Positions 1-42,109 of a DNA stretch of 54,368 bases are shown piece by piece. Positions within the stretch are counted from its first letter, which is position 1. The number at the start of each line of letters is the position of its first letter. The position numbers and the translations under genes are program-made. The stretch is from assembly GCA_977020255.1 (NCBI GenBank), contig CDROCS010005030.1:1-54368 (forward strand). Direction: 5' to 3'. The notes under the pieces are model-generated. The model saw only the letters and a program-made list of their open reading frames with translations. It was not told the origin of the DNA and ran no database searches. The stretch comes from Obrimoposthia wandeli. Taxonomy: Eukaryota.

Positions 1-97
1 TTATAGTCAATGTCAAGACAGTAGACGTTTGACAGATGATGAGTCATCGATTTGTTTAAAACGGTCATGCCATAAAAGAAACTGACTTTCTATCAAA

Positions 98-361
98 ATG
101 AAGATCGAGTCCAATTTTCAAAATAATTCTAGAAAATGCGAGAAAATTCCTTAAATACGCTAACTTACTACCGAATAAACTGTCTGCCGGCTGCCAGACC
201 TGCATATCCACTGTGATTTTCAAGCTTAAAATAGACAAACAATACCTTGCACAACTTTCTTCAGTCCCTGGGCTACTATTATCAAACTCTACAAAAGAAT
301 TATATAAGTATTCGATCTTCACTTGTGCCACAAGAACAATATGTTGAGTTTTGCAGGTTAA
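98..361 (+). pseudogene. GTF2B: Degenerate 3' fragment of TFIIB-like gene (B unit 0)
   Basis: It has the same ...tttctatc|aaaATGaagatc junction and B-type SNPs as 6233-6490, but with several extra indels and substitutions that break the frame. Confidence 0.85.
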
Positions 362-1559
362 ACTGTGATCGAAGGATGTCTCAGTCTAACAAGTGCCGTT
401 TTTATATAATTATTATTGTGTTAATAAATTATAGAGTAAAATATATTATGATCTACGATTTTATGTTGTTAAAGTTTTATTTCTACTAAATTGTGAAATT
501 TATTTTCAGGAGGTATACTTTTTTGTTTTAAAATCTACATTTGTAATAACTATTTCAACAATGCTCAGATACATCTAGGACTAGTGCTACTACTAATACC
601 ATCGATTGTAAATATACTTTATATTTAGTGATACTTATAAAACCAAATATTGTATAAGTGTATTATGTATATATTTGAGCATTTCATAAAACAATTTGCT
701 AAATGAGTACATTAATTTGATCAAATAAATACACTATATTTCAAGATACTAAAAATATTCAAAATAATCAAGCAATATATTTATTTTATGGAATCAATAT
801 TTGAATATCATCCAATATTATGGAGAAAGTGATTGACTATTACTTCAATTGTGAAAATAGTCGAATTTTAGATCATATTACAATTAGTTACATGCATTAT
901 TTGTGACATATTTCCTCATAATATGTAACATACACAGTGACAATGTAATCCACGTCTGATAAATATACTTAATCAATCATGAGTAATGTAAAATAATGGC
1001 TAGTAAGTATGATACAAGTGAACATGAATATTCCAATCAAGTAGTTGTGGAAACTAATCTTCACGCGAGTTAAACTCGCAAAAATATGTTATAAAATAAT
1101 GACTAAGACCATTTGTGATTAAAAGAATGTATTTTCATATTTACTATTATAAATAATGGTTAACAACTATGATTTATTTCAATTCATATCACATTAAACT
1201 AGTCTTGGCAACTTTTTTCATAGTTACACACATTATCATAAGATACTCAATATCATTGTATTTCAATTGACTTATTCGGCAAATAATTTTTTTTGGAACT
1301 AATTTTGGTATGGTTACACACATTGTCATAATTTAACGGATGACAACTCTAATTTTATTTCAATCAACTTAACCCATAACTCTTGCAGTTCTGATAAAGT
1401 AAAAAAACAGTATATTAAGATTACATTTAAAAAGAAGAATAATAAGTCTTTTAAACGTCTTGGCCCTTGCAAGTTTGACCAAGATCAAACAAAGCCCATC
1501 AAATGTAACTTTAAAAGTATATAAATCATTTTTTATGAAGATTTTGACCCTTGAATGAA

Positions 1560-1615
1560 AACTTTCGAGGAATCACCTTCAAAGAAGCACTTTCGAGGAA
1601 GCACTTTCAAAGCTC
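1560..1615. repeat. Variable short tandem repeat (cactttcgaggaag / cactttcaaag) in every unit spacer
   Basis: The segment between ttgaatgaaa and gctccatgg differs in repeat content at ~1560, 6070, 7675, 12190, 13810, 18340, 22870, 27390, 31895, 36400 and 40920. Confidence 0.85.
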
Positions 1616-1861
1616 CATGGACTAAAGTGACCTCAAAAGCTCATGTATATTATAGTAAATGTCAACACAGTAGACGTTTGACAGATGATGAGTCATCGAT
1701 TTGTTTAAAAGGGTCATGCCATAAAAGAAACCGAGCTTTCTATCAGACGTCTTGCGTGAGTTTCGAGAAAAAAAGAGTTTGACTACATTTTTGATCAGTT
1801 TTAGAATTTTTTAAAACTTGGTTATATATAGTGGTATATAATCGTCGTCATCCACTCAATA

Positions 1862-2137
1862 TCACTGGATCTTTCATCTTATGTGTGTTCATGTACACAC
1901 ACACTTATTGTTGTGGATATAATGAAAAATAATGTTAGTATAAATGTCCTTGATTATTATTTGTTTGAATTTCAACCAATATAAATAGACTTGTCACTGG
2001 ATCTTTCATCTTGTATGTGTGTGTGTGTGTTCATGTACACACACACACTTATTGTTGTGGATATAATGAAAAATATTGTTAGTATAATTGTCCTTGAATT
2101 TTATTTGTTTGAATTTCAACCAATATAAATAGACTTG
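1862..2137. repeat. Internal ~132-144 bp direct duplication containing a (TG)n-tcatgt-(AC)n hairpin (every A unit)
   Basis: tcactggatctttcatctt...aatagacttg occurs at 1862-1993 and 1994-2137. The copies differ mainly in TG/AC tract length. Confidence 0.92.
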
Positions 2138-3825
2138 CTATAACGTATTTACTCGTGCGATATAACGCCCAATATCAATTTATGAGTTTAAAATGTTTAA
2201 ATTTATATTTAAGTGTCACGTAAAAATATTTTTAATATTTGAATTTGTAGCGCAAAAATCAGTTTATTAAAACAAAAATGCAGAGAACAAGATTTAAATG
2301 ATTGCAGAGATACGTCCAGTAGATCATCAGTCTACTGCATTATCCTCTCTACCATCATGCTCTGATATCACGCGTTTAGAGATAAAAATAGTTTAAGACA
2401 ATATAAAAACATGGGGAATTATTTTAAGGAAAACATTCATTGTAAAACATATTATATTCCAAGTTTCATAGCATATGCAGAGTTTTAATCATCTTAGGCA
2501 TCTATATTGTAAAGTGTTGGTTCGAGATTGTTGACTTATCGGACAATAGATTTTTAAACTCACTGAGTCATGACTTATGAGCTCAAATGTTAGACCGTAT
2601 CATCAAGTGTTACAATACAAATGACTTGACTTTTGACCTGAACTGATAACGGTCCAACATCCGAGCTCATGACTAAAGGGTCTAATGAATCAATGAGCTC
2701 AAATTGACACTTTACACTACTAAATATATTTATAAAACTCATCATTTATTCAGTAATTCTACAAAAGAAAGTTTGGAAATGTTTTTGCTGACAACTAATG
2801 ACTACTTGCTTACCATCAGATCAATGCAAACATATACTCTTTGACATTAGTCCGTATGTATGTTCCTTAATTTCTTGAGATGGTATAAAAGAGTGGTTTT
2901 GAAATATTTCGACATTCTACAATATACTTACAACTTGGATCTTAATTTTCTGTGAAACCGAATTTTATTTTCACCAATCGTATGTGTGTTTGACCTAACA
3001 AAATATGAAAGCTCTTAAAAGTATTAGTTACATATTTTATATACTATTTTTTTAAATTACCTATTTATTCTAAAACAAATTGAGTAACAAAACGTTTACA
3101 ACTCGTATTCATTATTTTAAATATTTATATGATTTTTCCCGTTTGTCGTTTATTTAAAGTAAGAAAATACCTACAAAAAATAAAACATTTATTTAAAAAC
3201 GATCCTTCAATGACCATATCGAATTTTTTAATAAATGTTAATATATCAGATAAATTGAAATTATTTACATTTTGTAAATAATTCAATTAAATCTATGACC
3301 TTTATTTAAAATTAAATATTAAATTAATTCAGATTTGGAAGCATTTATTAAAATCATTAAACCTAAATAATTCTATATATATTATAATTTTAGTTTGTTG
3401 TCAAAGTTACATAATATATTCAAGAGTTAAAGTTATAAATTTAAAATGTTGTTCTGTATTCATTCAATCATAATATCGATTTTTTACATTATTTACTAAT
3501 GTTTGAAGTAGTGGAAGAAACGTTTACCTCTGTCTTTGGAAAGTAAATGAAAATGATCAAGTTCTTGGTAATTGTCTGAAACAATGTCACCCACGATACA
3601 AATAAATGTAATTGGTAATTATTGGTGTCATATGTAAAACATCACAATGCTTTATTAAATTTGAATGATACCATACGATAATCAAAGAAAACTGTATTTG
3701 TAATGTTTAGTGCAATATGATATTTTATCAAAGTTTATGAATTAATGAACTGAAAACTTCATTTTGGTAATCAATTTACATTTTAATATTTTGTATGTCG
3801 ATTCATCATTTGAATTATAATTTGA

Positions 3826-3937
3826 CCAATAGAATATTTAATAATTAAATATTAAATATTTTAAATATTTTAAGATACTAAGATTGTTAATTACTTGTAT
3901 AAAACTAATCTTTCTAATTCAAAACTCAGTAACATAA
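3826..3937 (+). promoter_or_regulatory. Pol II core promoter of TFIIB-like gene: CCAAT, TATAAAA, Inr TCAGT
   Basis: CCAAT is at 3826-3830, TATAAAA at 3898-3904 and TCAGT at 3926-3930. The Inr A (3928) lies exactly 30 nt from the first T of the TATA box, and the ATG is at 3938. The same arrangement precedes all eight A genes. Confidence 0.75.
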
Positions 3938-4884
3938 ATGGCACAAACTGTTAGATGTAAATATCACATAGATGCTGAGCTGATTGAGGACCGCAAGGCT
4001 GGTGACTTGGTTTGTCCGGTCTGTGGACTTGTGGTGGCACAGCGAGTTATTGATTTCTCTAGTGAATACCGAGTTTTTGAGGACGACACAGACAATAAAT
4101 GTCGAGTTGGAGGTGTTGAAGATGAAAATCATGTTGAAGGAACATCATACACGGGTATAAATGTTGGGTATGGGCAGAATTTAAACGAGGATGGCACTTT
4201 GAAGTTCCGAAATTTTAATCTAAGATCACCCATGGAGCAATTTGTCTATTCTTGTAATCGGAAAATTGCCATTGTCAGCGAAAGACTCAATTTAAAGAAT
4301 ATGTTCTCGAAAGAAGCACAATATTTTGCCAAAGAACTTGCTAAGTCGATGTTCAAACCACAGTCAATAGAGAGCAACAAAAAGTCCAGTAAACTTCGAC
4401 ACTTTGCTGTTGCTGCAGCATGCATCTTCATTACTCTAGACTCGTCCGTAAACCCAATGTCTCAGAAAGAGATCGCTCTGGCGGCAAATGTATCAGAAAA
4501 GCAAGTCAATAAAATAATACGGAATAACCCGAATATCTGGAAGAAAAATTATGACAACAGCAGTAAGGCGAGTAAATATGCACAGAAATTTTCAATGCAG
4601 TTGGATATTCAGGACAGAAAAATAAAAATGAAGATCGAGTCAATTTCCAAAATAATTCTAGAAAATGCGAGAAAATTCCTAAATACACTAACTCACTACC
4701 GAATAAACTGTCTGCAGCTGCAGTCTACATGTCCACTGTGATTCTCAAGCTTAAAATAGACAAACAATACCTTGCACAACTTTCTTCCAGTTCCTGGAGC
4801 TCTATTGTCAAACTCTACAAAGAATTATATAGTATTCGATCTTCACTTGTGCCACAAGAACAATATGTTGAGTTTTGCAGTTAA
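3938..4884 (+). pseudogene. GTF2B: TFIIB-like gene copy A1 with 1-bp frameshift near 4678 (possibly a consensus error)
   Basis: It matches the intact copies except aaattcctaaa versus aaattccctaaa. The ORF track gives a 267-aa frameshifted product. Confidence 0.85.
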
Positions 4885-6232
4885 ACTGTGATCGAAGGAT
4901 GTCTCGGTCTAACAAATGCCGTTTTTAATATAATTATTATTGTGTTAATAAATTAAACTAAAAATATATTATGATCTACGATTTTATGTTGTTAAAGTTT
5001 TTATTTCTACTAAATTGTGAAATTTATTTTCAGGTATATTTTTTGTTTTAAAATCTACATTTTGTAATAACTATTTCAACAATGCTCAGATACATCTAGG
5101 ACTAGTGCTACTACTAATACCATCGATTGTAAATATGCTTTATATTTAGTGATACTTATAAAACCAAATATTGTATAAGTGTATTATGTCTCATATTTGA
5201 GCATTTCATAAAACAATTTGCTAAATGAGTACATTAATTTGATCAAATAAATACACTATATTTCAAGATACTAAAAATATTCAAAATAATCAAGCAATAT
5301 ATTTATTTTATGGAATCAATATTTGAATATCATCCCAATATTGGAGAGAAATTAATGATTGACTATTACTTCAATTGTGAAAATAGTCGAATTTTAGATC
5401 ATATTACAATTAGTTACATGCATTATTTGTGACATATTTCCTCATAATATGTAACATACACAGTGACAATGTAATCCACGTCTGATAAATATGAGTAATG
5501 TCATAAAATAATGGCTAGTAAGTATGATACAAGTGAACATGAATGTTTAATCAAGTAGTTGTGGAAACTAATCTTCACGCGGTTAAACTCGCAAAAAATG
5601 TTATAAAATAATGACTAAGACCATTTGTGATTAAAAGAATGTATTTTCATATTTACTATTATAAATAATGGTTAACAACTATGATTGTATTTCAATTCAT
5701 ATCACATTAAACTAGTCTTGGCAACTTTTTTCATAGTTACACACATTATCATAAGATACTCAATATCATTGTATTTCAATTGACTTATTCGGCAAATAAT
5801 TTTTTTTGGAACTAATTTTGGTATGGTTACACACATTGTCATAATTTAACGGATGACAACTCTAATTTTATTTCAATCAACTTAACCCATAACTCTTGCA
5901 GTTCTGATAAAGTAAAAAAACAGTATATTAAGATTACATTTAAAAAGAAGAATAATAAGTCTTTTAAACGTCTTGGCCCTTGCAAGTTTGACCAAGATCA
6001 AACAAAGCCCATCAAATGTAACTTTAAAAGTATATAAATCATTTTTTATGAAGATTTTGACCCTTGAATGAAAACTTTCGAGGAACCACTTTCAAAGCTC
6101 CATGGACTAAAGTGACCTCAAAAGCTCATGTATATTATAGTAAATGTCAAGACAGTAGACGTTTGACAGATGATGAGTCATCGATTTGTTTAAAACGGTC
6201 ATGCCATAAAAGAAACAGAGCTTTCTATCAAA

Positions 6233-6490
6233 ATGAAGATCGAGTCAATTTCCAAAATAATTCTAGAAAATGCGAGAAAATTCCTTAAATACGCTAACTT
6301 ACTACCGAATAAACTGTCTGCAGCTGCAGTCTACATGTCCACTGTGATTCTCAAGCTTAAAATAGACAAACAATACCTTGCACAACTTTCTTCCAGTCCC
6401 TGGAGCTCTATTGTCAAACTCTACAAAGAATTATATAGTATTCGATCTTCACTTGTGCCACAAGAACAATATGTTGAGTTTTGCAGTTAA
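6233..6490 (+). pseudogene. GTF2B: TFIIB-like 3' fragment ORF, 85 aa (B unit 1)
   Basis: It equals residues 231-315 of the full protein with 4 substitutions and is joined directly to spacer DNA by a ~2.88 kb deletion. Confidence 0.9.
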
Positions 6491-10040: not shown

Positions 10041-10987
10041 ATGGCACAAACTGTTAGATGTAAATATCACATAGATGCTGAGCTGATTGAGGACCGCAAG
10101 GCTGGTGACTTGGTTTGTCCGGTCTGTGGACTTGTGGTGGCACAGCGAGTTATTGATTTCTCTAGTGAATACCGAGTTTTTGAGGACGACACAGACAATA
10201 AATGTCGAGTTGGAGGTGTTGAAGATGAAAATCATGTTGAAGGAACATCATACACGGGTATAAATGTTGGGTATGGGCAGAATTTAAACGAGGATGGCAC
10301 TTTGAAGTTCCGAAATTTTAATCTAAGATCACCCATGGAGCAATTTGTCTATTCTTGTAATCGGAAAATTGCCATTGTCAGCGAAAGACTCAATTTAAAG
10401 AATATGTTCTCGAAAGAAGCACAATATTTTGCCAAAGAACTTGCTAAGTCGATGTTCAAACCACAGTCAATAGAGAGCAACAAAAAGTCCAGTAAACTTC
10501 GACACTTTGCTGTTGCTGCAGCATGCATCTTCATTACTCTAGACTCGTCCGTAAACCCAATGTCTCAGAAAGAGATCGCTCTGGCGGCAAATGTATCAGA
10601 AAAGCAAGTCAATAAAATAATACGGAATAACCCGAATATCTGGAAGAAAAATTATGACAACAGCAGTAAGGCGAGTAAATATGCACAGAAATTTTCAATG
10701 CAGTTGGATATTCAGGACAGAAAAATAAAAATGAAGATCGAGTCAATTTCCAAAATAATTCTAGAAAATGCGAGAAAATGCCTAAATACACTAACTCACT
10801 ACCGAATAAACTGTCTGCAGCTGCAGTCTACATGTCCACTGTGATTCTCAAGCTTAAAATAGACAAACAATACCTTGCACAACTTTCTTCCAGTTCCTGG
10901 AGCTCTATTGTCAAACTCTACAAAGAATTATATAGTATTCGATCTTCACTTGTGCCACAAGAACAATATGTTGAGTTTTGCAGTTAA
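10041..10987 (+). pseudogene. GTF2B: TFIIB-like gene copy A2 with 1-bp frameshift near 10780 (possibly a consensus error)
   Basis: It reads aaaatgcctaaa versus intact aaaattccctaaa. The ORF track shows 267-aa and 69-aa pieces. Confidence 0.85.
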
Positions 10988-12351
10988 ACTGTGATCGAAG
11001 GATGTCTCGGTCTAACAAATGCCGTTTTTAATATAATTATTATTGTGTTAATAAATTAAACTAAAAATATATTATGATCTACGATTTTATGTTGTTAAAG
11101 TTTTTATTTCTACTAAATTGTGAAATTTATTTTCAGGTATATTTTTTGTTTTAAAATCTACATTTTGTAATAACTATTTCAACAATGCTCAGATACATCT
11201 AGGACTAGTGCTACTACTAATACCATCGATTGTAAATATGCTTTATATTTAGTGATACTTATAAAACCAAATATTGTATAAGTGTATTATGTCTCATATT
11301 TGAGCATTTCATAAAACAATTTGCTAAATGAGTACATTAATTTGATCAAATAAATACACTATATTTCAAGATACTAAAAATATTCAAAATAATCAAGCAA
11401 TATATTTATTTTATGGAATCAATATTTGAATATCATCCCAATATTGGAGAGAAATTAATGATTGACTATTACTTCAATTGTGAAAATAGTCGAATTTTAG
11501 ATCATATTACAATTAGTTACATGCATTATTTGTGACATATTTCCTCATAATATGTAACATACACAGTGACAATGTAATCCACGTCTGATAAATACATACT
11601 TAATCAAACATGAGTAATGTCATAAAATAATGGCTAGTAAGTATGATACAAGTGAACATGAATGTTTAATCAAGTAGTTGTGGAAACTAATCTTCACGCG
11701 GTTAAACTCGCAAAAAATGTTATAAAATAATGACTAAGACCATTTGTGATTAAAAGAATGTATTTTCATATTTACTATTATAAATAATGGTTAACAACTA
11801 TGATTGTATTTCAATTCATATCACATTAAACTAGTCTTGGCAACTTTTTTCATAGTTACACACATTATCATAAGATACTCAATATCATTGTATTTCAATT
11901 GACTTATTCGGCAAATAATTTTTTTTGGAACTAATTTTGGTATGGTTACACACATTGTCATAATTTAACGGATGACAACTCTAATTTTATTTCAATCAAC
12001 TTAACCCATAACTCTTGCAGTTCTGATAAAGTAAAAAAACAGTATATTAAGATTACATTTAAAAAGAAGAATAATAAGTCTTTTAAACGTCTTGGCCCTT
12101 GCAAGTTTGACCAAGATCAAACAAAGCCCATCAAATGTAACTTTAAAAGTATATAAATCATTTTTTATGAAGATTTTGACCCTTGAATGAAAACTTTCGA
12201 GGAACCACTTTCAAAGCTCCATGGACTAAAGTGACCTCAAAAGCTCATGTATATTATAGTAAATGTCAAGACAGTAGACGTTTGACAGATGATGAGTCAT
12301 CGATTTGTTTAAAACGGTCATGCCATAAAAGAAACAGAGCTTTCTATCAAA

Positions 12352-12609
12352 ATGAAGATCGAGTCAATTTCCAAAATAATTCTAGAAAATGCGAGAAAAT
12401 TCCTTAAATACGCTAACTTACTACCGAATAAACTGTCTGCAGCTGCAGTCTACATGTCCACTGTGATTCTCAAGCTTAAAATAGACAAACAATACCTTGC
12501 ACAACTTTCTTCCAGTCCCTGGAGCTCTATTGTCAAACTCTACAAAGAATTATATAGTATTCGATCTTCACTTGTGCCACAAGAACAATATGTTGAGTTT
12601 TGCAGTTAA
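12352..12609 (+). pseudogene. GTF2B: TFIIB-like 3' fragment ORF, 85 aa (B unit 2)
   Basis: The translation is identical to B unit 1. Confidence 0.9.
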
Positions 12610-16188: not shown

Positions 16189-17136
16189 ATGGCACAAACT
16201 GTTAGATGTAAATATCACATAGATGCTGAGCTGATTGAGGACCGCAAGGCTGGTGACTTGGTTTGTCCGGTCTGTGGACTTGTGGTGGCACAGCGAGTTA
16301 TTGATTTCTCTAGTGAATACCGAGTTTTTGAGGACGACACAGACAATAAATGTCGAGTTGGAGGTGTTGAAGATGAAAATCATGTTGAAGGAACATCATA
16401 CACGGGTATAAATGTTGGGTATGGGCAGAATTTAAACGAGGATGGCACTTTGAAGTTCCGAAATTTTAATCTAAGATCACCCATGGAGCAATTTGTCTAT
16501 TCTTGTAATCGGAAAATTGCCATTGTCAGCGAAAGACTCAATTTAAAGAATATGTTCTCGAAAGAAGCACAATATTTTGCCAAAGAACTTGCTAAGTCGA
16601 TGTTCAAACCACAGTCAATAGAGAGCAACAAAAAGTCCAGTAAACTTCGACACTTTGCTGTTGCTGCAGCATGCATCTTCATTACTCTAGACTCGTCCGT
16701 AAACCCAATGTCTCAGAAAGAGATCGCTCTGGCGGCAAATGTATCAGAAAAGCAAGTCAATAAAATAATACGGAATAACCCGAATATCTGGAAGAAAAAT
16801 TATGACAACAGCAGTAAGGCGAGTAAATATGCACAGAAATTTTCAATGCAGTTGGATATTCAGGACAGAAAAATAAAAATGAAGATCGAGTCAATTTCCA
16901 AAATAATTCTAGAAAATGCGAGAAAATTCCCTAAATACACTAACTCACTACCGAATAAACTGTCTGCAGCTGCAGTCTACATGTCCACTGTGATTCTCAA
17001 GCTTAAAATAGACAAACAATACCTTGCACAACTTTCTTCCAGTTCCTGGAGCTCTATTGTCAAACTCTACAAAGAATTATATAGTATTCGATCTTCACTT
17101 GTGCCACAAGAACAATATGTTGAGTTTTGCAGTTAA
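16189..17136 (+). CDS. GTF2B: Transcription initiation factor IIB-like protein, 315 aa, intronless (A3)
   Basis: Zn ribbon C7-x2-H10...C26-x2-C29 (CKYHIDAELIEDRKAGDLVCPVCGLVV), B-reader RVIDFSSEYRVF, linker RVG, and cyclin-fold motifs AVAAACIF..PMSQKEI and SAAAVYM. The layout is collinear with animal TFIIB (human 316 aa). Confidence 0.93.
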   Translation: MAQTVRCKYHIDAELIEDRKAGDLVCPVCGLVVAQRVIDFSSEYRVFEDDTDNKCRVGGVEDENHVEGTSYTGINVGYGQNLNEDGTLKFRNFNLRSPMEQFVYSCNRKIAIVSERLNLKNMFSKEAQYFAKELAKSMFKPQSIESNKKSSKLRHFAVAAACIFITLDSSVNPMSQKEIALAANVSEKQVNKIIRNNPNIWKKNYDNSSKASKYAQKFSMQLDIQDRKIKMKIESISKIILENARKFPKYTNSLPNKLSAAAVYMSTVILKLKIDKQYLAQLSSSSWSSIVKLYKELYSIRSSLVPQEQYVEFCS

Positions 17137-17198
17137 ACTGTGATCGAAGGATGTCTCGGTCTAACAAATGCCGTTTTTAATATAATTATTATTGTGTT

Positions 17199-17204: not shown

Positions 17205-20200
17205 TTAAACTAAAAATATATTATGATCTACGATTTTATGTTGTTAAAGTTTTTATTTCTACTAAATTGTGAAATTTATTTTCAGGTATATTTTTTGTTT
17301 TAAAATCTACATTTTGTAATAACTATTTCAACAATGCTCAGATACATCTAGGACTAGTGCTACTACTAATACCATCGATTGTAAATATGCTTTATATTTA
17401 GTGATACTTATAAAACCAAATATTGTATAAGTGTATTATGTCTCATATTTGAGCATTTCATAAAACAATTTGCTAAATGAGTACATTAATTTGATCAAAT
17501 AAATACACTATATTTCAAGATACTAAAAATATTCAAAATAATCAAGCAATATATTTATTTTATGGAATCAATATTTGAATATCATCCCAATATTGGAGAG
17601 AAATTAATGATTGACTATTACTTCAATTGTGAAAATAGTCGAATTTTAGATCATATTACAATTAGTTACATGCATTATTTGTGACATATTTCCTCATAAT
17701 ATGTAACATACACAGTGACAATGTAATCCACGTCTGATAAATACATACTTAATCAATCATGAGTAATGTCATAAAATAATGGCTAGTAAGTATGATACAA
17801 GTGAACATGAATGTTTAATCAAGTAGTTGTGGAAACTAATCTTCACGCGGTTAAACTCGCAAAAAATGTTATAAAATAATGACTAAGACCATTTGTGATT
17901 AAAAGAATGTATTTTCATATTTACTATTATAAATAATGGTTAACAACTATGATTGTATTTCAATTCATATCACATTAAACTAGTCTTGGCAACTTTTTTC
18001 ATAGTTACACACATTATCATAAGATACTCAATATCATTGTATTTCAATTGACTTATTCGGCAAATAATTTTTTTGGAACTAATTTTGGTATGGTTACACA
18101 CATTGTCATAATTTAACGGATGACAACTCTAATTTTATTTCAATCAACTTAACCCATAACTCTTGCAGTTCTGATAAAGTAAAAAACAGTATATTAAGAT
18201 TACATTTAAAAAGAAGAATAATAAGTCTTTTAAACGTCTTGGCCCTTGCAAGTTTGACCAAGATCAAACAAAGCCCATCAAATGTAACTTTAAAAGTATA
18301 TAAATCATTTTTTATGAAGATTTTGACCCTTGAATGAAAACTTTCGAGGAATCACCTTCAAAGAAGCACTTTCGAGGAAGCACTTTCAAAGCTCCATGGA
18401 CTAAAGTGACCTCAAAAGCTCATGTATATTATAGTAAATGTCAACACAGTAGACGTTTGACAGATGATGAGTCATCGATTTGTTTAAAAGGGTCATGCCA
18501 TAAAAGAAACCGAGCTTTCTATCAGACGTCTTGCGTGAGTTTCGAGAAAAAAAGAGTTTGACTACATTTTTGATCAGTTTTAGAATTTTTTAAAAACTTG
18601 GTTATATATAGTGGTATATAATCGTCGTCATCCACTCAATATCACTGGATCTTTCATCTTATGTGTGTTCATGTACACACACACTTATTGTTGTGGATAT
18701 AATGAAAAATAATGTTAGTATAAATGTCCTTGATTATTATTTGTTTGAATTTCAACCAATATAAATAGACTTGTCACTGGATCTTTCATCTTGTATGTGT
18801 GTGTGTGTGTTCATGTACACACACACACTTATTGTTGTGGATATAATGAAAAATATTGTTAGTATAATTGTCCTTGAATTTTATTTGTTTGAATTTCAAC
18901 CAATATAAATAGACTTGCTATAACGTATTTACTCGTGCGATATAACGCCCAATATCAATTTATGAGTTTAAAATGTTTAAATTTATATTTAAGTGTCACG
19001 TAAAAATATTTTTAATATTTGAATTTGTAGCGCAAAAATCAGTTTATTAAAACAAAAATGCAGAGAACAAGATTTAAATGATTGCAGAGATACGTCCAGT
19101 AGATCATCAGTCTACTGCATTATCCTCTCTACCATCATGCTCTGATATCACGCGTTTAGAGATAAAAATAGTTTAAGACAATATAAAAACATGGGGAATT
19201 ATTTTAAGGAAAACATTCATTGTAAAACATATTATATTCCAAGTTTCATAGCATATGCAGAGTTTTAATCATCTTAGGCATCTATATTGTAAAGTGTTGG
19301 TTCGAGATTGTTGACTTATCGGACAATAGATTTTTAAACTCACTGAGTCATGACTTATGAGCTCAAATGTTAGACCGTATCATCAAGTGTTACAATACAA
19401 ATGACTTGACTTTTGACCTGAACTGATAACGGTCCAACATCCGAGCTCATGACTAAAGGGTCTAATGAATCAATGAGCTCAAATTGACACTTTACACTAC
19501 TAAATATATTTATAAAACTCATCATTTATTCAGTAATTCTACAAAAGAAAGTTTGGAAATGTTTTTGCTGACAACTAATGACTACTTGCTTACCATCAGA
19601 TCAATGCAAACATATACTCTTTGACATTAGTCCGTATGTATGTTCCTTAATTTCTTGAGATGGTATAAAAAGAGTGGTTTTGAAATATTTCGACATTCTA
19701 CAATATACTTACAACTTGGATCTTAATTTTCTGTGAAACCGAATTTTATTTTCACCAATCGTATGTGTGTTTGACCTAACAAAATATGAAAGCTCTTAAA
19801 AGTATTAGTTACATATTTTATATACTATTTTTTAAATTACCTATTTATTCTAAAACAAATTGAGTAACAAAACGTTTACAACTCGTATTCATTATTTTAA
19901 ATATTTATATGATTTTTCCCGTTTGTTGTTTATTTAAAGTAAGAAAATACCTACAAAAAAATAAAACATTTATTTAAAAACGATCCTTCAATGACCATAT
20001 CGAATTTTTTAATAAATGTTAATATATCAGATAAATTGAAATTATTTACATTTTGTAAATAATTCAATTAAATCTATGACCTTTATTTAAAATTAAATAT
20101 TAAATTAATTCAGATTTGGAAGCATTTATTAAAATCATTAAACCTAAATAATTCTATATATATTATAATTTTAGTTTGTTGTCAAAGTTACATAATATAT

Positions 20201-25239: not shown

Positions 25240-26187
25240 ATGGCACAAACTGTTAGATGTAAATATCACATAGATGCTGAGCTGATTGAGGACCGCAAGG
25301 CTGGTGACTTGGTTTGTCCGGTCTGTGGACTTGTGGTGGCACAGCGAGTTATTGATTTCTCTAGTGAATACCGAGTTTTTGAGGACGACACAGACAATAA
25401 ATGTCGAGTTGGAGGTGTTGAAGATGAAAATCATGTTGAAGGAACATCATACACGGGTATAAATGTTGGGTATGGGCAGAATTTAAACGAGGATGGCACT
25501 TTGAAGTTCCGAAATTTTAATCTAAGATCACCCATGGAGCAATTTGTCTATTCTTGTAATCGGAAAATTGCCATTGTCAGCGAAAGACTCAATTTAAAGA
25601 ATATGTTCTCGAAAGAAGCACAATATTTTGCCAAAGAACTTGCTAAGTCGATGTTCAAACCACAGTCAATAGAGAGCAACAAAAAGTCCAGTAAACTTCG
25701 ACACTTTGCTGTTGCTGCAGCATGCATCTTCATTACTCTAGACTCGTCCGTAAACCCAATGTCTCAGAAAGAGATCGCTCTGGCGGCAAATGTATCAGAA
25801 AAGCAAGTCAATAAAATAATACGGAATAACCCGAATATCTGGAAGAAAAATTATGACAACAGCAGTAAGGCGAGTAAATATGCACAGAAATTTTCAATGC
25901 AGTTGGATATTCAGGACAGAAAAATAAAAATGAAGATCGAGTCAATTTCCAAAATAATTCTAGAAAATGCGAGAAAATTCCCTAAATACACTAACTCACT
26001 ACCGAATAAACTGTCTGCAGCTGCAGTCTACATGTCCACTGTGATTCTCAAGCTTAAAATAGACAAACAATACCTTGCACAACTTTCTTCCAGTTCCTGG
26101 AGCTCTATTGTCAAACTCTACAAAGAATTATATAGTATTCGATCTTCACTTGTGCCACAAGAACAATATGTTGAGTTTTGCAGTTAA
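25240..26187 (+). CDS. GTF2B: TFIIB-like protein, 315 aa (A5)
   Basis: The translation is identical to A3. Confidence 0.93.
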   Translation: MAQTVRCKYHIDAELIEDRKAGDLVCPVCGLVVAQRVIDFSSEYRVFEDDTDNKCRVGGVEDENHVEGTSYTGINVGYGQNLNEDGTLKFRNFNLRSPMEQFVYSCNRKIAIVSERLNLKNMFSKEAQYFAKELAKSMFKPQSIESNKKSSKLRHFAVAAACIFITLDSSVNPMSQKEIALAANVSEKQVNKIIRNNPNIWKKNYDNSSKASKYAQKFSMQLDIQDRKIKMKIESISKIILENARKFPKYTNSLPNKLSAAAVYMSTVILKLKIDKQYLAQLSSSSWSSIVKLYKELYSIRSSLVPQEQYVEFCS

Positions 26188-29746: not shown

Positions 29747-30694
29747 ATGGCACAAACTGTTAGATGTAAATATCACATAGATGCTGAGCTGATTGAGGAC
29801 CGCAAGGCTGGTGACTTGGTTTGTCCGGTCTGTGGACTTGTGGTGGCACAGCGAGTTATTGATTTCTCTAGTGAATACCGAGTTTTTGAGGACGACACAG
29901 ACAATAAATGTCGAGTTGGAGGTGTTGAAGATGAAAATCATGTTGAAGGAACATCATACACGGGTATAAATGTTGGGTATGGGCAGAATTTAAACGAGGA
30001 TGGCACTTTGAAGTTCCGAAATTTTAATCTAAGATCACCCATGGAGCAATTTGTCTATTCTTGTAATCGGAAAATTGCCATTGTCAGCGAAAGACTCAAT
30101 TTAAAGAATATGTTCTCGAAAGAAGCACAATATTTTGCCAAAGAACTTGCTAAGTCGATGTTCAAACCACAGTCAATAGAGAGCAACAAAAAGTCCAGTA
30201 AACTTCGACACTTTGCTGTTGCTGCAGCATGCATCTTCATTACTCTAGACTCGTCCGTAAACCCAATGTCTCAGAAAGAGATCGCTCTGGCGGCAAATGT
30301 ATCAGAAAAGCAAGTCAATAAAATAATACGGAATAACCCGAATATCTGGAAGAAAAATTATGACAACAGCAGTAAGGCGAGTAAATATGCACAGAAATTT
30401 TCAATGCAGTTGGATATTCAGGACAGAAAAATAAAAATGAAGATCGAGTCAATTTCCAAAATAATTCTAGAAAATGCGAGAAAATTCCCTAAATACACTA
30501 ACTCACTACCGAATAAACTGTCTGCAGCTGCAGTCTACATGTCCACTGTGATTCTCAAGCTTAAAATAGACAAACAATACCTTGCACAACTTTCTTCCAG
30601 TTCCTGGAGCTCTATTGTCAAACTCTACAAAGAATTATATAGTATTCGATCTTCACTTGTGCCACAAGAACAATATGTTGAGTTTTGCAGTTAA
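29747..30694 (+). CDS. GTF2B: TFIIB-like protein, 315 aa (A6)
   Basis: The translation is identical to A3. Confidence 0.93.
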   Translation: MAQTVRCKYHIDAELIEDRKAGDLVCPVCGLVVAQRVIDFSSEYRVFEDDTDNKCRVGGVEDENHVEGTSYTGINVGYGQNLNEDGTLKFRNFNLRSPMEQFVYSCNRKIAIVSERLNLKNMFSKEAQYFAKELAKSMFKPQSIESNKKSSKLRHFAVAAACIFITLDSSVNPMSQKEIALAANVSEKQVNKIIRNNPNIWKKNYDNSSKASKYAQKFSMQLDIQDRKIKMKIESISKIILENARKFPKYTNSLPNKLSAAAVYMSTVILKLKIDKQYLAQLSSSSWSSIVKLYKELYSIRSSLVPQEQYVEFCS

Positions 30695-34249: not shown

Positions 34250-35197
34250 ATGGCACAAACTGTTAGATGTAAATATCACATAGATGCTGAGCTGATTGAG
34301 GACCGCAAGGCTGGTGACTTGGTTTGTCCGGTCTGTGGACTTGTGGTGGCACAGCGAGTTATTGATTTCTCTAGTGAATACCGAGTTTTTGAGGACGACA
34401 CAGACAATAAATGTCGAGTTGGAGGTGTTGAAGATGAAAATCATGTTGAAGGAACATCATACACGGGTATAAATGTTGGGTATGGGCAGAATTTAAACGA
34501 GGATGGCACTTTGAAGTTCCGAAATTTTAATCTAAGATCACCCATGGAGCAATTTGTCTATTCTTGTAATCGGAAAATTGCCATTGTCAGCGAAAGACTC
34601 AATTTAAAGAATATGTTCTCGAAAGAAGCACAATATTTTGCCAAAGAACTTGCTAAGTCGATGTTCAAACCACAGTCAATAGAGAGCAACAAAAAGTCCA
34701 GTAAACTTCGACACTTTGCTGTTGCTGCAGCATGCATCTTCATTACTCTAGACTCGTCCGTAAACCCAATGTCTCAGAAAGAGATCGCTCTGGCGGCAAA
34801 TGTATCAGAAAAGCAAGTCAATAAAATAATACGGAATAACCCGAATATCTGGAAGAAAAATTATGACAACAGCAGTAAGGCGAGTAAATATGCACAGAAA
34901 TTTTCAATGCAGTTGGATATTCAGGACAGAAAAATAAAAATGAAGATCGAGTCAATTTCCAAAATAATTCTAGAAAATGCGAGAAAATTCCCTAAATACA
35001 CTAACTCACTACCGAATAAACTGTCTGCAGCTGCAGTCTACATGTCCACTGTGATTCTCAAGCTTAAAATAGACAAACAATACCTTGCACAACTTTCTTC
35101 CAGTTCCTGGAGCTCTATTGTCAAACTCTACAAAGAATTATATAGTATTCGATCTTCACTTGTGCCACAAGAACAATATGTTGAGTTTTGCAGTTAA
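34250..35197 (+). CDS. GTF2B: TFIIB-like protein, 315 aa (A7)
   Basis: The translation is identical to A3. Confidence 0.93.
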   Translation: MAQTVRCKYHIDAELIEDRKAGDLVCPVCGLVVAQRVIDFSSEYRVFEDDTDNKCRVGGVEDENHVEGTSYTGINVGYGQNLNEDGTLKFRNFNLRSPMEQFVYSCNRKIAIVSERLNLKNMFSKEAQYFAKELAKSMFKPQSIESNKKSSKLRHFAVAAACIFITLDSSVNPMSQKEIALAANVSEKQVNKIIRNNPNIWKKNYDNSSKASKYAQKFSMQLDIQDRKIKMKIESISKIILENARKFPKYTNSLPNKLSAAAVYMSTVILKLKIDKQYLAQLSSSSWSSIVKLYKELYSIRSSLVPQEQYVEFCS

Positions 35198-38100: not shown

Positions 38101-38768
38101 TTTTGTAAATAATTCAATTAAATCTATGACCTTTATTTAAAATTAAATATTAAATTAATTCAGATTTGGAAGCATTTATTAAAATCATTAAACCTAAATA
38201 ATTCTATATATATTATAATTTTAGTTTGTTGTCAAAGTTACATAATATATTCAAGAGTTAAAGTTATAAATTTAAAATGTTGTTCTGTATTCATTCAATC
38301 ATAATATCGATTTTTTACATTATTTACTAATGTTTGAAGTAGTGGAAGAAACGTTTACCTCTGTCTTTGGAAAGTAAATGAAAATGATCAAGTTCTTGGT
38401 AATTGTCTGAAACAATGTCACCCACGATACAAATAAATGTAATTGGTAATTATTGGTGTCATATGTAAAACATCACAATGCTTTATTAAATTTGAATGAT
38501 ACCATACGATAATCAAAGAAAACTGTATTTGTAATGTTTAGTGCAATATGATATTTTATCAAAGTTTATGAATTAATGAACTGAAAACTTCATTTTGGTA
38601 ATCAATTTACATTTTAATATTTTGTATGTCGATTCATCATTTGAATTATAATTTGACCAATAGAATATTTAATAATTAAATATTAAATATTTTAAATATT
38701 TTAAGATACTAAGATTGTTAATTACTTGTATAAAACTAATCTTTCTAATTCAAAACTCAGTAACATAA

Positions 38769-39716
38769 ATGGCACAAACTGTTAGATGTAAATATCACAT
38801 AGATGCTGAGCTGATTGAGGACCGCAAGGCTGGTGACTTGGTTTGTCCGGTCTGTGGACTTGTGGTGGCACAGCGAGTTATTGATTTCTCTAGTGAATAC
38901 CGAGTTTTTGAGGACGACACAGACAATAAATGTCGAGTTGGAGGTGTTGAAGATGAAAATCATGTTGAAGGAACATCATACACGGGTATAAATGTTGGGT
39001 ATGGGCAGAATTTAAACGAGGATGGCACTTTGAAGTTCCGAAATTTTAATCTAAGATCACCCATGGAGCAATTTGTCTATTCTTGTAATCGGAAAATTGC
39101 CATTGTCAGCGAAAGACTCAATTTAAAGAATATGTTCTCGAAAGAAGCACAATATTTTGCCAAAGAACTTGCTAAGTCGATGTTCAAACCACAGTCAATA
39201 GAGAGCAACAAAAAGTCCAGTAAACTTCGACACTTTGCTGTTGCTGCAGCATGCATCTTCATTACTCTAGACTCGTCCGTAAACCCAATGTCTCAGAAAG
39301 AGATCGCTCTGGCGGCAAATGTATCAGAAAAGCAAGTCAATAAAATAATACGGAATAACCCGAATATCTGGAAGAAAAATTATGACAACAGCAGTAAGGC
39401 GAGTAAATATGCACAGAAATTTTCAATGCAGTTGGATATTCAGGACAGAAAAATAAAAATGAAGATCGAGTCAATTTCCAAAATAATTCTAGAAAATGCG
39501 AGAAAATTCCCTAAATACACTAACTCACTACCGAATAAACTGTCTGCAGCTGCAGTCTACATGTCCACTGTGATTCTCAAGCTTAAAATAGACAAACAAT
39601 ACCTTGCACAACTTTCTTCCAGTTCCTGGAGCTCTATTGTCAAACTCTACAAAGAATTATATAGTATTCGATCTTCACTTGTGCCACAAGAACAATATGT
39701 TGAGTTTTGCAGTTAA
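38769..39716 (+). CDS. GTF2B: TFIIB-like protein, 315 aa (A8)
   Basis: The translation is identical to A3. Confidence 0.93.
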   Translation: MAQTVRCKYHIDAELIEDRKAGDLVCPVCGLVVAQRVIDFSSEYRVFEDDTDNKCRVGGVEDENHVEGTSYTGINVGYGQNLNEDGTLKFRNFNLRSPMEQFVYSCNRKIAIVSERLNLKNMFSKEAQYFAKELAKSMFKPQSIESNKKSSKLRHFAVAAACIFITLDSSVNPMSQKEIALAANVSEKQVNKIIRNNPNIWKKNYDNSSKASKYAQKFSMQLDIQDRKIKMKIESISKIILENARKFPKYTNSLPNKLSAAAVYMSTVILKLKIDKQYLAQLSSSSWSSIVKLYKELYSIRSSLVPQEQYVEFCS

Positions 39717-41079
39717 ACTGTGATCGAAGGATGTCTCGGTCTAACAAATGCCGTTTTTAATATAATTATTATTGTGTTAATAAATTAAACTAAAAATATA
39801 TTATGATCTACGATTTTATGTTGTTAAAGTTTTTATTTCTACTAAATTGTGAAATTTATTTTCAGGTATATTTTTTGTTTTAAAATCTACATTTTGTAAT
39901 AACTATTTCAACAATGCTCAGATACATCTAGGACTAGTGCTACTACTAATACCATCGATTGTAAATATGCTTTATATTTAGTGATACTTATAAAACCAAA
40001 TATTGTATAAGTGTATTATGTCTCATATTTGAGCATTTCATAAAACAATTTGCTAAATGAGTACATTAATTTGATCAAATAAATACACTATATTTCAAGA
40101 TACTAAAAATATTCAAAATAATCAAGCAATATATTTATTTTATGGAATCAATATTTGAATATCATCCCAATATTGGAGAGAAATTAATGATTGACTATTA
40201 CTTCAATTGTGAAAATAGTCGAATTTTAGATCATATTACAATTAGTTACATGCATTATTTGTGACATATTTCCTCATAATATGTAACATACACAGTGACA
40301 ATGTAATCCACGTCTGATAAATACATACTTAATCAATCATGAGTAATGTCATAAAATAATGGCTAGTAAGTATGATACAAGTGAACATGAATGTTTAATC
40401 AAGTAGTTGTGGAAACTAATCTTCACGCGGTTAAACTCGCAAAAAATGTTATAAAATAATGACTAAGACCATTTGTGATTAAAAGAATGTATTTTCATAT
40501 TTACTATTATAAATAATGGTTAACAACTATGATTGTATTTCAATTCATATCACATTAAACTAGTCTTGGCAACTTTTTTCATAGTTACACACATTATCAT
40601 AAGATACTCAATATCATTGTATTTCAATTGACTTATTCGGCAAATAATTTTTTTGGAACTAATTTTGGTATGGTTACACACATTGTCATAATTTAACGGA
40701 TGACAACTCTAATTTTATTTCAATCAACTTAACCCATAACTCTTGCAGTTCTGATAAAGTAAAAAAACAGTATATTAAGATTACATTTAAAAAGAAGAAT
40801 AATAAGTCTTTTAAACGTCTTGGCCCTTGCAAGTTTGACCAAGATCAAACAAAGCCCATCAAATGTAACTTTAAAAGTATATAAATCATTTTTTATGAAG
40901 ATTTTGACCCTTGAATGAAAACTTTCGAGGAACCACTTTCAAAGCTCCATGGACTAAAGTGACCTCAAAAGCTCATGTATATTATAGTAAATGTCAAGAC
41001 AGTAGACGTTTGACAGATGATGAGTCATCGATTTGTTTAAAACGGTCATGCCATAAAAGAAACAGAGCTTTCTATCAAA

Positions 41080-41337
41080 ATGAAGATCGAGTCAATTTCC
41101 AAAATAATTCTAGAAAATGCGAGAAAATTCCTTAAATACGCTAACTTACTACCGAATAAACTGTCTGCAGCTGCAGTCTACATGTCCACTGTGATTCTCA
41201 AGCTTAAAATAGACAAACAATACCTTGCACAACTTTCTTCCAGTCCCTGGAGCTCTATTGTCAAACTCTACAAAGAATTATATAGTATTCGATCTTCACT
41301 TGTGCCACAAGAACAATATGTTGAGTTTTGCAGTTAA
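41080..41337 (+). pseudogene. GTF2B: TFIIB-like 3' fragment ORF, 85 aa (B unit 3)
   Basis: It has the B-type junction and coding SNPs, but its 3' flank is A-type, so the unit is recombinant. Confidence 0.9.
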
Positions 41338-42109
41338 ACTGTGATCGAAGGATGTCTCGGTCTAACAAATGCCGTTTTTAATATAATTATTATTGTGTTA
41401 ATAAATTAAACTAAAAATATATTACGATCTACGATTTTATGTTGTTAAAGTTTTTATTTCTACTAAATTGTGAAATTTATTTTCAGGTATATTTATTGTT
41501 TTAAAATCTACATTTTGTAATAACTATTTCAACAATGCTCAGATACATCTAGGACTAGTGCTACTACTAATACCGTCGATTGTAAATATGCTTTATATTT
41601 AGTGATACTTATAAAACCAAATATTGTATAAGTGTATTATGTCTCATATTTGAGGATTTCAAAAAACAATTTGCTAAATGAGTACATTAATTTGATCAAA
41701 TAAATACACTATATTTCAAGATACTAAAAATATTCAAAATAATCAAGCAATATATTTATTTTATGGAATCAATATTTGAATATCATCCCAATATTGGAGA
41801 GAAATTAATGATTGACTATTACTTCAATTGTGAAAATAGTCGAATTTTAGATCATATTACAATTAGTTACATGCATTATTTGTGACATATTTCCTCATAA
41901 TATGTAACATACACAGTGACAATGTAATCCACGTCTGATAAATACATACTTAATCAAACATGAGTAATGTCATAAAATAATGAGTAGAGAGATGTGTCCC
42001 CTTCCGGCCACCCCCCCTCTTAGCGAAAACCGATAATTTTTTTTTTTTTGGGCGGAAATTTTAAATACATACTATAATACTTAATTTTTCCAAGGTCAAT
42101 GTGAAAAGT

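Follow-up and report, generated by a model that had tools for sequence, protein, structure and literature searches.

The 54,368-nucleotide contig C5030 of Obrimoposthia wandeli, analysed here in its entirety and referred to as the window, raises the question of why genes related to TFIIB lie side by side in large number, and whether the protein that they encode is likely to act in transcription. A tandem array had been described in an earlier note made from the letters of the sequence, and this observation was confirmed: positions 1-41982 consist of head-to-tail copies of a TFIIB paralog, all on the + strand, with a unit length of 4.50-4.53 kb and 99.2-99.7% identity between units (blastn of one unit). 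The first base of the contig already lies within the array, which is therefore truncated on its left side; the right end is at 41982. When the 315-aa ORF was compared with the window by tblastn, the reported count of at least 8 full-length and 4 truncated copies was recovered as six intact copies, two frameshifted copies and four C-terminal fragments. The six intact ORFs, which had been said to encode one protein, are 100% identical by tblastn and are also identical at the nucleotide level. The array is laid out as follows.

1..41982, + strand: TFIIB-paralog tandem array, 4.5-kb unit; left side cut by the contig end, right end within a truncated unit
92..3937, + strand: segment equivalent to unit 685-4530, with a 5'-truncated, frameshifted ORF remnant (~114-354) after deletion junction 1 (~92)
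3938..4741, + strand: full-length copy with a 1-nt deletion at ORF nt 741, 267-aa open frame
6227..6490, + strand: deletion junction 2 and 5'-truncated copy, codons 229-315 (tblastn 6227-6487)
10041..10844, + strand: second full-length copy with the identical 1-nt deletion, 267-aa frame
12346..12609, + strand: deletion junction 3 and 5'-truncated copy (tblastn 12346-12606)
16189..17136, + strand: intact 315-aa TFIIB-paralog ORF, copy 1 of 6
20719..21666, + strand: intact ORF, copy 2 of 6
25240..26187, + strand: intact ORF, copy 3 of 6
29747..30694, + strand: intact ORF, copy 4 of 6
34250..35197, + strand: intact ORF, copy 5 of 6
38769..39716, + strand: intact ORF, copy 6 of 6, followed by deletion junction 4
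41074..41337, + strand: deletion junction 4 and 5'-truncated copy (tblastn 41074-41334), with the array end 645 nt beyond, at 41982

Copies differ from one another by 0-10 substitutions per 2.3 kb, and present units by ≤0.4%. Across the eight full-length ORFs there are no substitutions over 948 nt, apart from the deletion at nt 741, which is common to both 267-aa copies, and one adjacent change in the copy at 10041. In the copy at 3938..4741 the second cyclin fold is mostly lost, and the remaining codons are out of frame up to 4881. All four truncated copies share a single junction, at which unit 2336 (...CTTTCTATCA) is joined to unit ~685-689 (AAATGAAG...); the junction corresponds to a single 2.88-kb deletion spanning two adjacent units, which was afterwards propagated. 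The truncated copy at 6227..6490 contains an 85-aa ORF at 6233-6490.

The DNA around the ORFs has the following features.

17224..19335, + strand: variable region (unit 1036-3147), the sole part of the unit that differs between copies
20607..20685, + strand: promoter-like motifs of ORF copy 2, CCAAT at 20607-20611 (-112) and TATAAAA at 20679-20685 (-40 from the ATG)
21729..21734, + strand: AATAAA of copy 2, 63 nt past the stop codon, without a poly(A) tract after it
42110..42727, no strand assigned: array flank of 194-bp and 51-bp tandem repeats, satellite

CCAAT and TATAAAA are present in every unit and, as judged by motif, probably represent promoter-like elements. Five full units are free of substitutions relative to one another over the 1.38 kb that precedes the ORF, and the region upstream of the ORF is ~81% conserved in the paralog loci C5523 and C3146. 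The variable region comprises a dispersed repeat (unit ~1235-1970), a 132-144-bp internal duplication and an indel hot spot (unit 2166-2213). Beyond the array, the flanking satellite reaches extreme abundance in the DNA runs, and Polinton debris is found nearby, including a pPolB fragment at a distance of 4.5 kb. Such a setting, on an unplaced contig of small size, is typical of heterochromatin, and this was counted against function.

The identity of the protein as a divergent, intronless TFIIB paralog was borne out by Pfam, HMMER, a fold model and fold matches. The 315-aa ORF matches PF08271 (2e-8) and PF00382 (9e-6), each above its curated cut-off, and its best solved match is human TFIIB (E 4e-24), colinear over 5-306 versus 13-301; the N-terminal and linker resemblance to animal TFIIB noted earlier is present in this HMMER alignment. 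The domain order is zinc ribbon, B-reader, B-linker and two cyclin folds. The AF2 model (pLDDT 83.9) shows the ribbon and both cyclin folds, the latter at pLDDT >90, and the folds that match best come from TFIIB chains of Pol II pre-initiation complexes and from TFIIBc-TBP-DNA crystals (TMt 0.72-0.77). The core has a pI of 9.9. Identity to canonical TFIIB is ~28% overall and ~20% in the core, and a search of 1.84 billion cluster representatives yielded no relative exceeding 35% identity; among named relatives, the TFIIBs of flatworms and rotifers come closest. With animal TFIIBs as nearest relatives, viral folds at 10-17% identity and an IMG/VR search without a match, the gene is of host rather than viral origin.

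The protein also differs from canonical TFIIB at residues that hold TBP. N-terminal invariants retained are C7, H10, C26, C29, E43, R45, R56 and G58, and human W52 is replaced by Y. The positions of human R169, R175 and K188 are occupied by D168, M174 and E187, which is a new observation. Among 46 homologues, position 174 is Arg in all 46, archaeal TFB included, and position 168 is R or K in 40 and acidic in none. In human TFIIB, R169E was reported to abolish association with TBP-TATA, and R169E/K188E lowered TBP binding further (PMC6004067). Alignment to these mutated residues suggests that the array protein may have lost TBP binding. The missing Arg, which never varies between archaea and man, might just as well reflect decay of function. 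A second gene of this genome, C3317, has E168, V174 and D187 at the same three positions; the acidic state, being common to both genes, is therefore ancient and conserved. On the TBP side, every host paralog examined retains the acidic stirrup YEPE[LM]F.

A separate, canonical, intron-containing TFIIB, for which the earlier note had recommended a search, was found on contig C3153, with long introns and an exon matching human TFIIB at E 1e-23. The accompanying premise that TFIIB is a single-copy gene fails for this genome, in which TFIIB-type genes form at least five lineages. Divergent paralogs other than the array gene are C6808, C3317 and C2765. C3317 has at least three introns, is 41.6% identical to the array gene and colinear with it to the last residues, and forms a clade with it in a quick tree (SH-aLRT 94-100). 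This makes retroposition, as proposed, or intron loss plausible, but of the hallmarks of retroposition neither a poly(A) tract nor a target-site duplication remains at the array. Because the paralog loci share ~1.7 kb of upstream DNA, later spread took place at the DNA level.

Copies elsewhere in the genome bear on how the units are kept alike. C1405 is ~8% diverged (92% identity) and spans 1.07 units, while the older C790 is exactly one permuted unit with the same 5 bp (ATATT) on both flanks; the tandem state predates both. C1405 at this divergence spans more than one unit, whereas present units differ by ≤0.4%; homogenisation, as the note had supposed in invoking concerted evolution, is therefore favoured over one recent burst. 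Frameshifts, deletions or the loss of a zinc ligand mark the dispersed copies C2196, C1405, C790, C574, C3146 and C5523, and the array lineage is the only intact one. They form a star tree centred on the array sequence, whose own terminal branch has almost no length, also when third codon positions or non-coding DNA are considered. Within the array, no statistical sign of selection on the ORF was seen (about one of 16 variable columns falls in it, against 3.4 expected), and intact ORFs at 0.1-0.4% divergence could simply be young. Against C5523, a copy that has itself lost a zinc ligand, dN/dS is 0.49-0.66, which may also weigh against function.

Is the array itself real? Expansion of one or two true copies by the assembler might be suspected on a small unplaced contig that begins within a repeat, and all four sequencing runs come from one sample, probably the one behind the assembly. 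Similar coverage of spacer and ORF shows that every run behaves as DNA. However, the units are told apart by substitutions and indels of their own, which follow a gradient from neighbour to neighbour, and in contigs built from the runs a given unit position has alternative letters of comparable depth. These contigs also show a variant at ORF nt 582 (run X4) that occurs in none of the assembled copies. Array k-mer depth (~1300-2200 in X1) is within the range of the flanking repeated DNA, and C2196 carries further units with a different array end. We therefore regard an artefact as very improbable. It is also improbable, though less so, that the unit is, or is part of, a mobile or virus-like element (Polinton-associated, giant-virus-derived or a self-propagating 4.5 kb) with the TFIIB-like gene as its own factor. 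The nearby pPolB fragment, the star tree (a shape expected of a transposable-element family), ~19,800 first-look TBP-domain candidates in the genome, with Polinton TBP-like genes in the thousands, and an integrase-like ORF fragment adjoining the C5523 and C3146 copies are consistent with such an element. Yet homology to these two loci stops before the integrase-like ORF, which has no Pfam match, and the unit contains neither terminal inverted nor long direct repeats and no second ORF >85 aa. The single unit of C790 between identical 5 bp resembles an insertion, but a one-unit permuted copy would equally result if a circle were cut out of a tandem array and inserted again. The protein's affinity to animal TFIIB, its intron-containing host relatives and the empty IMG/VR search also argue against an element.

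A more serious alternative, which we consider possible but doubtful, is that the gene is a functionless passenger: a dead or dying TFIIB derivative amplified within a probably heterochromatic macrosatellite, its intactness reflecting very recent homogenisation or amplification. The units differ by only 0-0.4%, with the ORF not significantly less variable than the spacer; 6 of the 12 copies are already broken (two frameshifted, four truncated); all dispersed copies have decayed; universal core residues have been lost; the flank is satellite and Polinton fragments; and the available runs all behave as DNA. On the other hand, a 948-nt open frame in DNA of 29% G+C does not survive by chance, and at so low an identity to canonical TFIIB the cyclin folds are still confidently modelled and nearly all N-terminal invariants kept. 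The array gene shares its acidic replacements at 168 and 187 with the 41.6%-identical, intron-containing C3317, and the array lineage alone, at the centre of the star tree, stayed open while copies of several ages decayed.

On balance, we lean towards a gene-bearing macrosatellite that encodes a lineage-restricted, high-dosage TFIIB variant, one that engages Pol II and is uncoupled from the TBP stirrup. In each 4.5-kb unit lies a single intronless gene, preceded by CCAAT and TATA-like motifs of its own, its product a very divergent animal TFIIB paralog of a subfamily that includes C3317. The intronless form most likely arose from this subfamily by retroposition or intron loss and would then have spread as DNA, carrying ~1.7 kb of upstream sequence along. 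From the structure of the copies, we infer that its tandem arrangement is older than the 8-20%-diverged dispersed copies and that unequal exchange kept the units near-identical. The protein appears to retain a Pol II-docking zinc ribbon, the conserved residues of B-reader and B-linker and, in a basic core, two cyclin repeats modelled with confidence, with the predicted TBP-holding residues replaced (R169 to D, the universally conserved R175 to M, K188 to E). As the Pol II-docking parts are kept and the TBP-holding residues replaced, a Pol II-engaging, TBP-uncoupled variant is most likely. It might serve as an alternative initiation factor that does not need TBP, or compete with canonical TFIIB; by analogy, it would probably do so at a restricted stage such as the germline or early embryo.

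Canonical animal TFIIB (GTF2B; human TFIIB PDB 5iy6, 7nvu, 1c9b, 1vol) is the closest known system, with the same length, domain order and C-H-C-C ligands and both the best sequence match and the best fold match, whereas the array gene is intronless, multi-copy and ~28% identical at the protein level. TFIIB-like proteins of NCLDVs (mimivirus, marseillevirus, asfarvirus C315R) share the fold (Foldseek E down to 7e-9) at just 10-17% identity, and the array has intron-containing host relatives and no viral gene context. Drosophila Stellate, a CK2-beta paralog, is an example of ampliconic or heterochromatic conflict gene arrays; it is likewise a paralog of a housekeeping protein in near-identical tandem copies beside satellite DNA with birth-and-death of copies, but the present array is without evidence for sex linkage, small-RNA control or drive. 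Primate TAF11L is a tandem cluster of intronless genes and, like the array, comprises multi-copy paralogs of a pre-initiation-complex component, although this is a TFIID subunit rather than TFIIB and the lineage is different. The DUX4/ZGA programme induces TAF11L members as a family (PMC13224869). A precedent exists in stalk-eyed flies (Diopsidae), each species of which has four rapidly evolving, testis-specific TFIIB paralogs (Baker et al. 2016, PMC4824122). The fly paralogs are dispersed and their testis expression was measured, whereas here the copies are identical and form a homogenised tandem array, in an unrelated, apparently spiralian-like lineage. Both are nonetheless lineage-specific expansions of an animal TFIIB, the fast-evolving fly copies arising by repeated duplication and the array standing in a genome with several TFIIB and TBP paralogs.

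The O. wandeli assembly comprises 1.35 Gb in 6,912 contigs with ~29% G+C, and the window is one entire contig of 54,368 bp (C5030). An earlier note had described at least eight full-length and four truncated copies of a TFIIB paralog gene here, six of them encoding the same 315-aa protein, and the ORF listing, tblastn and blastn all agree with that description. Alignment of one unit to the window by blastn gave unit sizes of 4.50-4.53 kb at 99.2-99.7% identity and placed the end of the array at 41982. Since the contig start falls inside the array, the array is incomplete on the left.

Features of the array and its flank (ORFs identified by ORF listing and tblastn)
1-41982, + strand: tandem array of 4.5-kb units, each containing the TFIIB paralog gene or part of it
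starts 16189, 20719, 25240, 29747, 34250 and 38769, + strand: six identical 315-aa ORFs
starts 3938 and 10041, + strand: two 267-aa ORFs
within the array, + strand: four C-terminal fragments of the array gene
6233-6490, 12352-12609 and 41080-41337: 85-aa ORFs made by deletion, whose in-frame ATG corresponds to full-length codon 231 and lies 3 nt past the junction
42110-42727: 194-bp tandem repeat (1.9 copies) and 51-bp repeat (5 copies), adjoining the array
46505-47068: ORF among protein-primed DNA polymerase B fragments (PF03175, E 1e-4)

Every unit carries a CCAAT at -112 and a TATAAAA at -40 relative to the ATG, and an AATAAA 63 nt 3' of the stop codon. Within the unit there is no further ORF longer than 85 aa and terminal repeats are absent; scanning the window for Rfam families and tRNAs gave no match. 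Unit positions 1235-1970, counted within one repeat, are a dispersed repeat that occurs at many other sites in the genome. Beyond the array end, the flank repeats reach a k-mer depth of 1e5 to 5.6e5 in four DNA runs, compared with ~1.5e3 for the array, and are a very abundant satellite of this genome. Further right, at 46332-54368, inverted duplications and 81-285-bp tandem repeats surround the polymerase B fragments; this stretch is Polinton debris and lies outside the array.

No substitution was observed among the eight full-length ORFs over 948 nt, and both 267-aa ORFs carry the same 1-nt deletion at ORF nt 741. All four truncated copies have one common junction, in which unit 2336 is joined to unit ~685-689; this is a single 2.88-kb deletion over two adjacent units that was later copied to four places, and it is present at both ends of the assembled array. 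The 85-aa ORFs that it creates comprise most of the second cyclin repeat and have no evident promoter. A comparison of five complete units shows 11 substitution columns, every one within unit 1036-3147 and none in the ORF or the 1.38 kb upstream of it. The contrast in variability between ORF and spacer is not significant within the array. Variants are common to adjacent units and form a gradient along the array. Each unit also has a hot spot of 6-28-bp indels at unit 2166-2213 (window 18354-18401 in one unit), located in a short imperfect repeat (CACCTTCAAAGAAGCACTTTCGAGGAAG...) and within a 67-75-aa ORF, whose copy on contig C2196 is 149 aa long.

Copies on other contigs cover the whole unit rather than the ORF alone, and range from nearly intact to heavily decayed.

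Dispersed copies of the unit, by contig
C2196: 96-98% identity to the unit; frameshifted, with a different array end
C1405: ~92% identity; internal deletions
C5523 and C3146: ~83% identity; C5523 still open, though its zinc ligand C29 has become R
C790: 70-95% identity; decayed, with stop codons and internal deletions
C574: older; interrupted by multiple stop codons

The surroundings of the C5523 and C3146 loci, and of a TFIIB-like locus on C2765, were read to ~1.5 kb. The C5523 and C3146 loci have ~1.7 kb of upstream DNA in common with the unit, which indicates spread at the DNA level. Just downstream of both copies, beyond the unit-homologous region, is an integrase-like ORF fragment (...DSGKEFY...HYSVFS...VERFNRRL...; L009:2639-3040 on the - strand of the C5523 locus, with an equivalent in L010 on C3146) that has no Pfam match at E <0.01. 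The C1405 copy runs from unit 2260 round to 2563, or 1.07 units, and was thus copied out of a tandem arrangement. At C790:9403-12692 there is exactly one circularly permuted unit, both ends of which lie at unit 3041-3045 with ATATT at each; either a one-unit circle that left the tandem array and re-inserted here or a mobile unit could account for this.

The C1405 and C790 copies are 8-20% diverged, compared with at most 0.4% among the present units. The far greater divergence of the dispersed copies favours long-standing homogenisation over a single recent burst, with the caveat that these copies evolve much faster than the array lineage, so that their ages are uncertain. The tandem state is older than the divergence of the units, and variants occur in non-adjacent units (the deletion junction in four, the frameshift in two). 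These results favour the proposal in the earlier note that concerted evolution keeps the copies uniform. In all three-taxon comparisons the terminal branch of the array is ~0, and this extends to third codon positions and to ~1 kb of upstream DNA that is non-coding; with C790 as outgroup, for example, there are ~2 changes on the array branch versus ~29 on the C1405 branch. Comparison of the array with loci L011, L022, L029 and L009 gave a star phylogeny in which rates differ at least 10-fold, both at every codon position and in non-coding upstream DNA. The array thus behaves like a master copy from which a star tree radiates, for which protein-level selection alone is an insufficient explanation. 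Hypermutation of the dispersed copies was also considered and rejected, the mutational spectrum being only the ordinary GC-to-AT bias.

Array sequence was found in four sequencing runs from one sample, none of which is recorded as RNA. Spacer and ORF are covered alike in all four, indicating that the runs are DNA. Array k-mer depth is ~1300-2200 in X1, 180-330 in X2, 27-32 in X3 and 55-105 in X4, and both flanks consist of repeats. A rough Poisson calculation from the summed length of contigs pointed to tens of copies, but the runs disagreed with one another and it was dropped. If the array were an expansion introduced by the assembly, a small number of genomic copies could have been multiplied into near-identical units. 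This is unlikely, since individual units have their own variants, a second contig (C2196) has a different array end, and the runs carry alternative letters at unit positions as well as one ORF variant missing from the assembled copies. For selection on the protein, the dN/dS of the array against C5523 is 0.49-0.66, a comparison in which the C5523 copy itself is probably dead. The polarised changes (2 synonymous and 3 non-synonymous on the array branch versus 19 and 35 on the other) are too few to decide.

The encoded protein belongs to the TFIIB family. The PF08271 zinc ribbon scores 34.1 bits against a cut-off of 29, and the zinc ligands C7, H10, C26 and C29 align with C15, H18, C34 and C37 of human TFIIB; for PF00382, repeat 1 alone is detected (26 bits against a cut-off of 23.6; both models from Pfam). 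In the B-reader and B-linker, E43, R45, R56 and G58 are retained and the linker GTLKFRN aligns with human GNSKYQN. Of the residues in the N-terminal third that are at least 80% conserved over 46 homologues, the array protein retains nearly all, the one exception being Y44, which replaces the near-invariant Trp of the B-reader. This third of TFIIB is responsible for docking to Pol II and for template reading. Among all PDB sequences, the top match is human TFIIB (E 4e-24, colinear over residues 5-306), followed by yeast TFIIB (3e-10) and archaeal TFB (1e-3). An AF2 model built from 49 sequences has a mean pLDDT of 83.9, with a three-stranded ribbon, a disordered segment at 37-76 and two cyclin folds, each a five-helix repeat with pLDDT >90. 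The low pLDDT of the reader and linker region is expected, since this segment orders only on Pol II. The top fold matches of the model are the TFIIB chains of human and yeast Pol II pre-initiation complexes and TFIIBc-TBP-DNA crystals; with Foldseek, the core matches TFIIBc in 1c9b, 1vol and 1d3u at TMt 0.72-0.77 and rmsd 3.6-4.2.

Close relatives are nonetheless absent from the databases searched. In an exhaustive HMMER search of 1.84 billion cluster representatives, the best match has 31-34% identity (E 5e-29) and none is closer; a word-indexed search of 5.8 billion returned one match, an archaeal TFB (3e-5). The few named relatives are TFIIBs of flatworm, rotifer, nematode and vertebrate. 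A viral or NCLDV origin was rejected, as giant-virus TFIIB-like proteins are just 10-17% identical whereas human TFIIB matches at E 4e-24; IMG/VR holds no relative of the array protein. Taken together, the best match to human TFIIB, the weak viral matches and relatives at no more than 34% identity indicate that the protein is a cellular TFIIB-family member, highly divergent and restricted to its lineage.

The array gene is not the only TFIIB of this species. The earlier note had called for a search for a separate intron-containing gene, and a canonical one is present on C3153, spanning >40 kb: one exon (L035) aligns to human TFIIB with E 1e-23, and ~42 kb from it, on the same strand, is the ribbon exon. 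C6808 (L021/L042) carries a moderately divergent TFIIB-type gene with introns, and C3317 (L018/L028) a gene that is 41.6% identical to the array protein, colinear through the last residues and interrupted by at least three introns. C2765 (L025) has a TFIIB-like ORF of 297 aa that lacks introns, shares 25% identity with the array protein and matches human TFIIB at E 1e-13; it adjoins a BED/Spin-doc-type zinc-finger ORF. BRF1-like genes are separate from all of these. In a quick ML tree, the array gene, the C5523 copy and the C3317 gene form one clade (SH-aLRT 94-100). TBP is multiplied as well, with two canonical-like genes head-to-head on C238, a third on C968, and two near-identical intronless two-repeat TBP-like ORFs of 214 aa on C60 and C1092 (L044-L049 for all of these TBP loci). 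Across the genome there are ~19,800 first-look TBP-domain candidates, mostly frames of 110-150 aa.

A retro-derived origin, as the earlier note had it, is in part supported. The array ORF is uninterrupted whereas its C3317 relative has introns at colinear positions, which makes such an origin plausible. However, neither the 3' poly(A) tract nor the target-site duplication of a processed retrogene was found, no A-tract following the AATAAA; in an old retrogene these hallmarks could have eroded. If the unit itself were a transposable element, the ATATT flanking the C790 copy could mark its insertion; the unit lacks terminal repeats and a second ORF, and the pPolB fragment lies outside the array.

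In human TFIIB, R169 and K188, basic residues of the first cyclin repeat, bind TBP at its acidic C-terminal stirrup. The array core is basic (pI 9.9) and well folded in the AF2 model, and the equivalents of human R169, R175 and K188 were placed via a high-posterior-probability stretch of the HMMER alignment to human TFIIB.

Three core positions of the array protein and their human equivalents
human R169, array D168: R or K in 40/46 homologues, acidic in none of the 46
human R175, array M174: Arg in 46/46 homologues, archaeal TFB included; in the P-R-T motif
human K188, array E187: K or R in 26/46 homologues

As judged from this alignment, the basic TBP-stirrup residues of repeat 1 and the universal Arg of the P-R-T motif are absent from the array protein. 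According to the passage in Dergai et al. (2018; PMC6004067) that cites Tansey and Herr (1997), human TFIIB R169E blocks association with the TBP-TATA complex, and with R169E/K188E TBP binding is lowered further (Dergai et al. 2018, PMC6004067). On the opposite side of the same interface, TBP E284R and E286R lower transcription (PMC7221094). At these positions the C3317 protein carries E, V and D. The remodelled surface is thus old and has kept its acidic character, a point in favour of function over decay. All host TBP paralogs that could be read (two on C238, one on C968 and the ORFs on C60 and C1092) retain the acidic stirrup YEPE[LM]F, so there is no obvious compensating partner among them.

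We lean, by a little over even chances, towards the reading that the array supplies a high-dosage TFIIB variant that would engage Pol II but not the TBP stirrup, and that may serve as a TBP-independent initiation factor or as a competitor of canonical TFIIB; this rests on the pattern of retained and replaced residues. Unlikely as a whole is a more elaborate account, in which a dosage-amplified TFIIB of altered specificity, with Pol II contact kept through the conserved ribbon, reader and linker, TBP-facing charges reversed (R169 to D, K188 to E) and R175 lost, would initiate without TBP or titrate Pol II off canonical or Polinton-driven (TBP-like-dependent) promoters as part of a host-element conflict in a genome with thousands of Polinton TBP-like genes, and in which the macrosatellite would seed further loci via excised one-unit circles. 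If the array gene is expressed, the importance of the finding would rise sharply: a Pol II-engaging variant would serve as a natural experiment, asking whether Pol II is recruited or blocked when TFIIB makes no use of the TBP stirrup, and would reveal how a core transcription factor fares under dosage amplification and concerted evolution. Should the gene be silent, the array is a clear case of birth-and-death and DNA-level dispersal of an ordinary macrosatellite unit.

The usual view of animal TFIIB is that of an invariant, single-copy component of the Pol II machinery; for TBP, TAFs and TFIIA, paralogs specific to a tissue are well known. In the literature, we found no description of a homogenised tandem array of identical TFIIB genes or of a TFIIB subfamily with a charge-reversed TBP surface, and the sole precedent found for tissue-specific TFIIB paralogs in animals is in stalk-eyed flies. 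Each species of these flies possesses four additional TFIIB paralogs, which evolve rapidly and are expressed in the testis, and which form part of a broader expansion of basal-transcription genes (PMC4824122). The O. wandeli genome is comparable in how many TFIIB and TBP genes it carries. Three features distinguish the present case: a homogenised, gene-bearing macrosatellite, several other TFIIB and TBP paralogs alongside it, and substitutions at residues whose mutation uncouples human TFIIB from TBP. The array can also be likened to the primate TAF11L family of the DUX4/ZGA programme (PMC13224869), since both consist of multi-copy paralogs of a pre-initiation-complex component.
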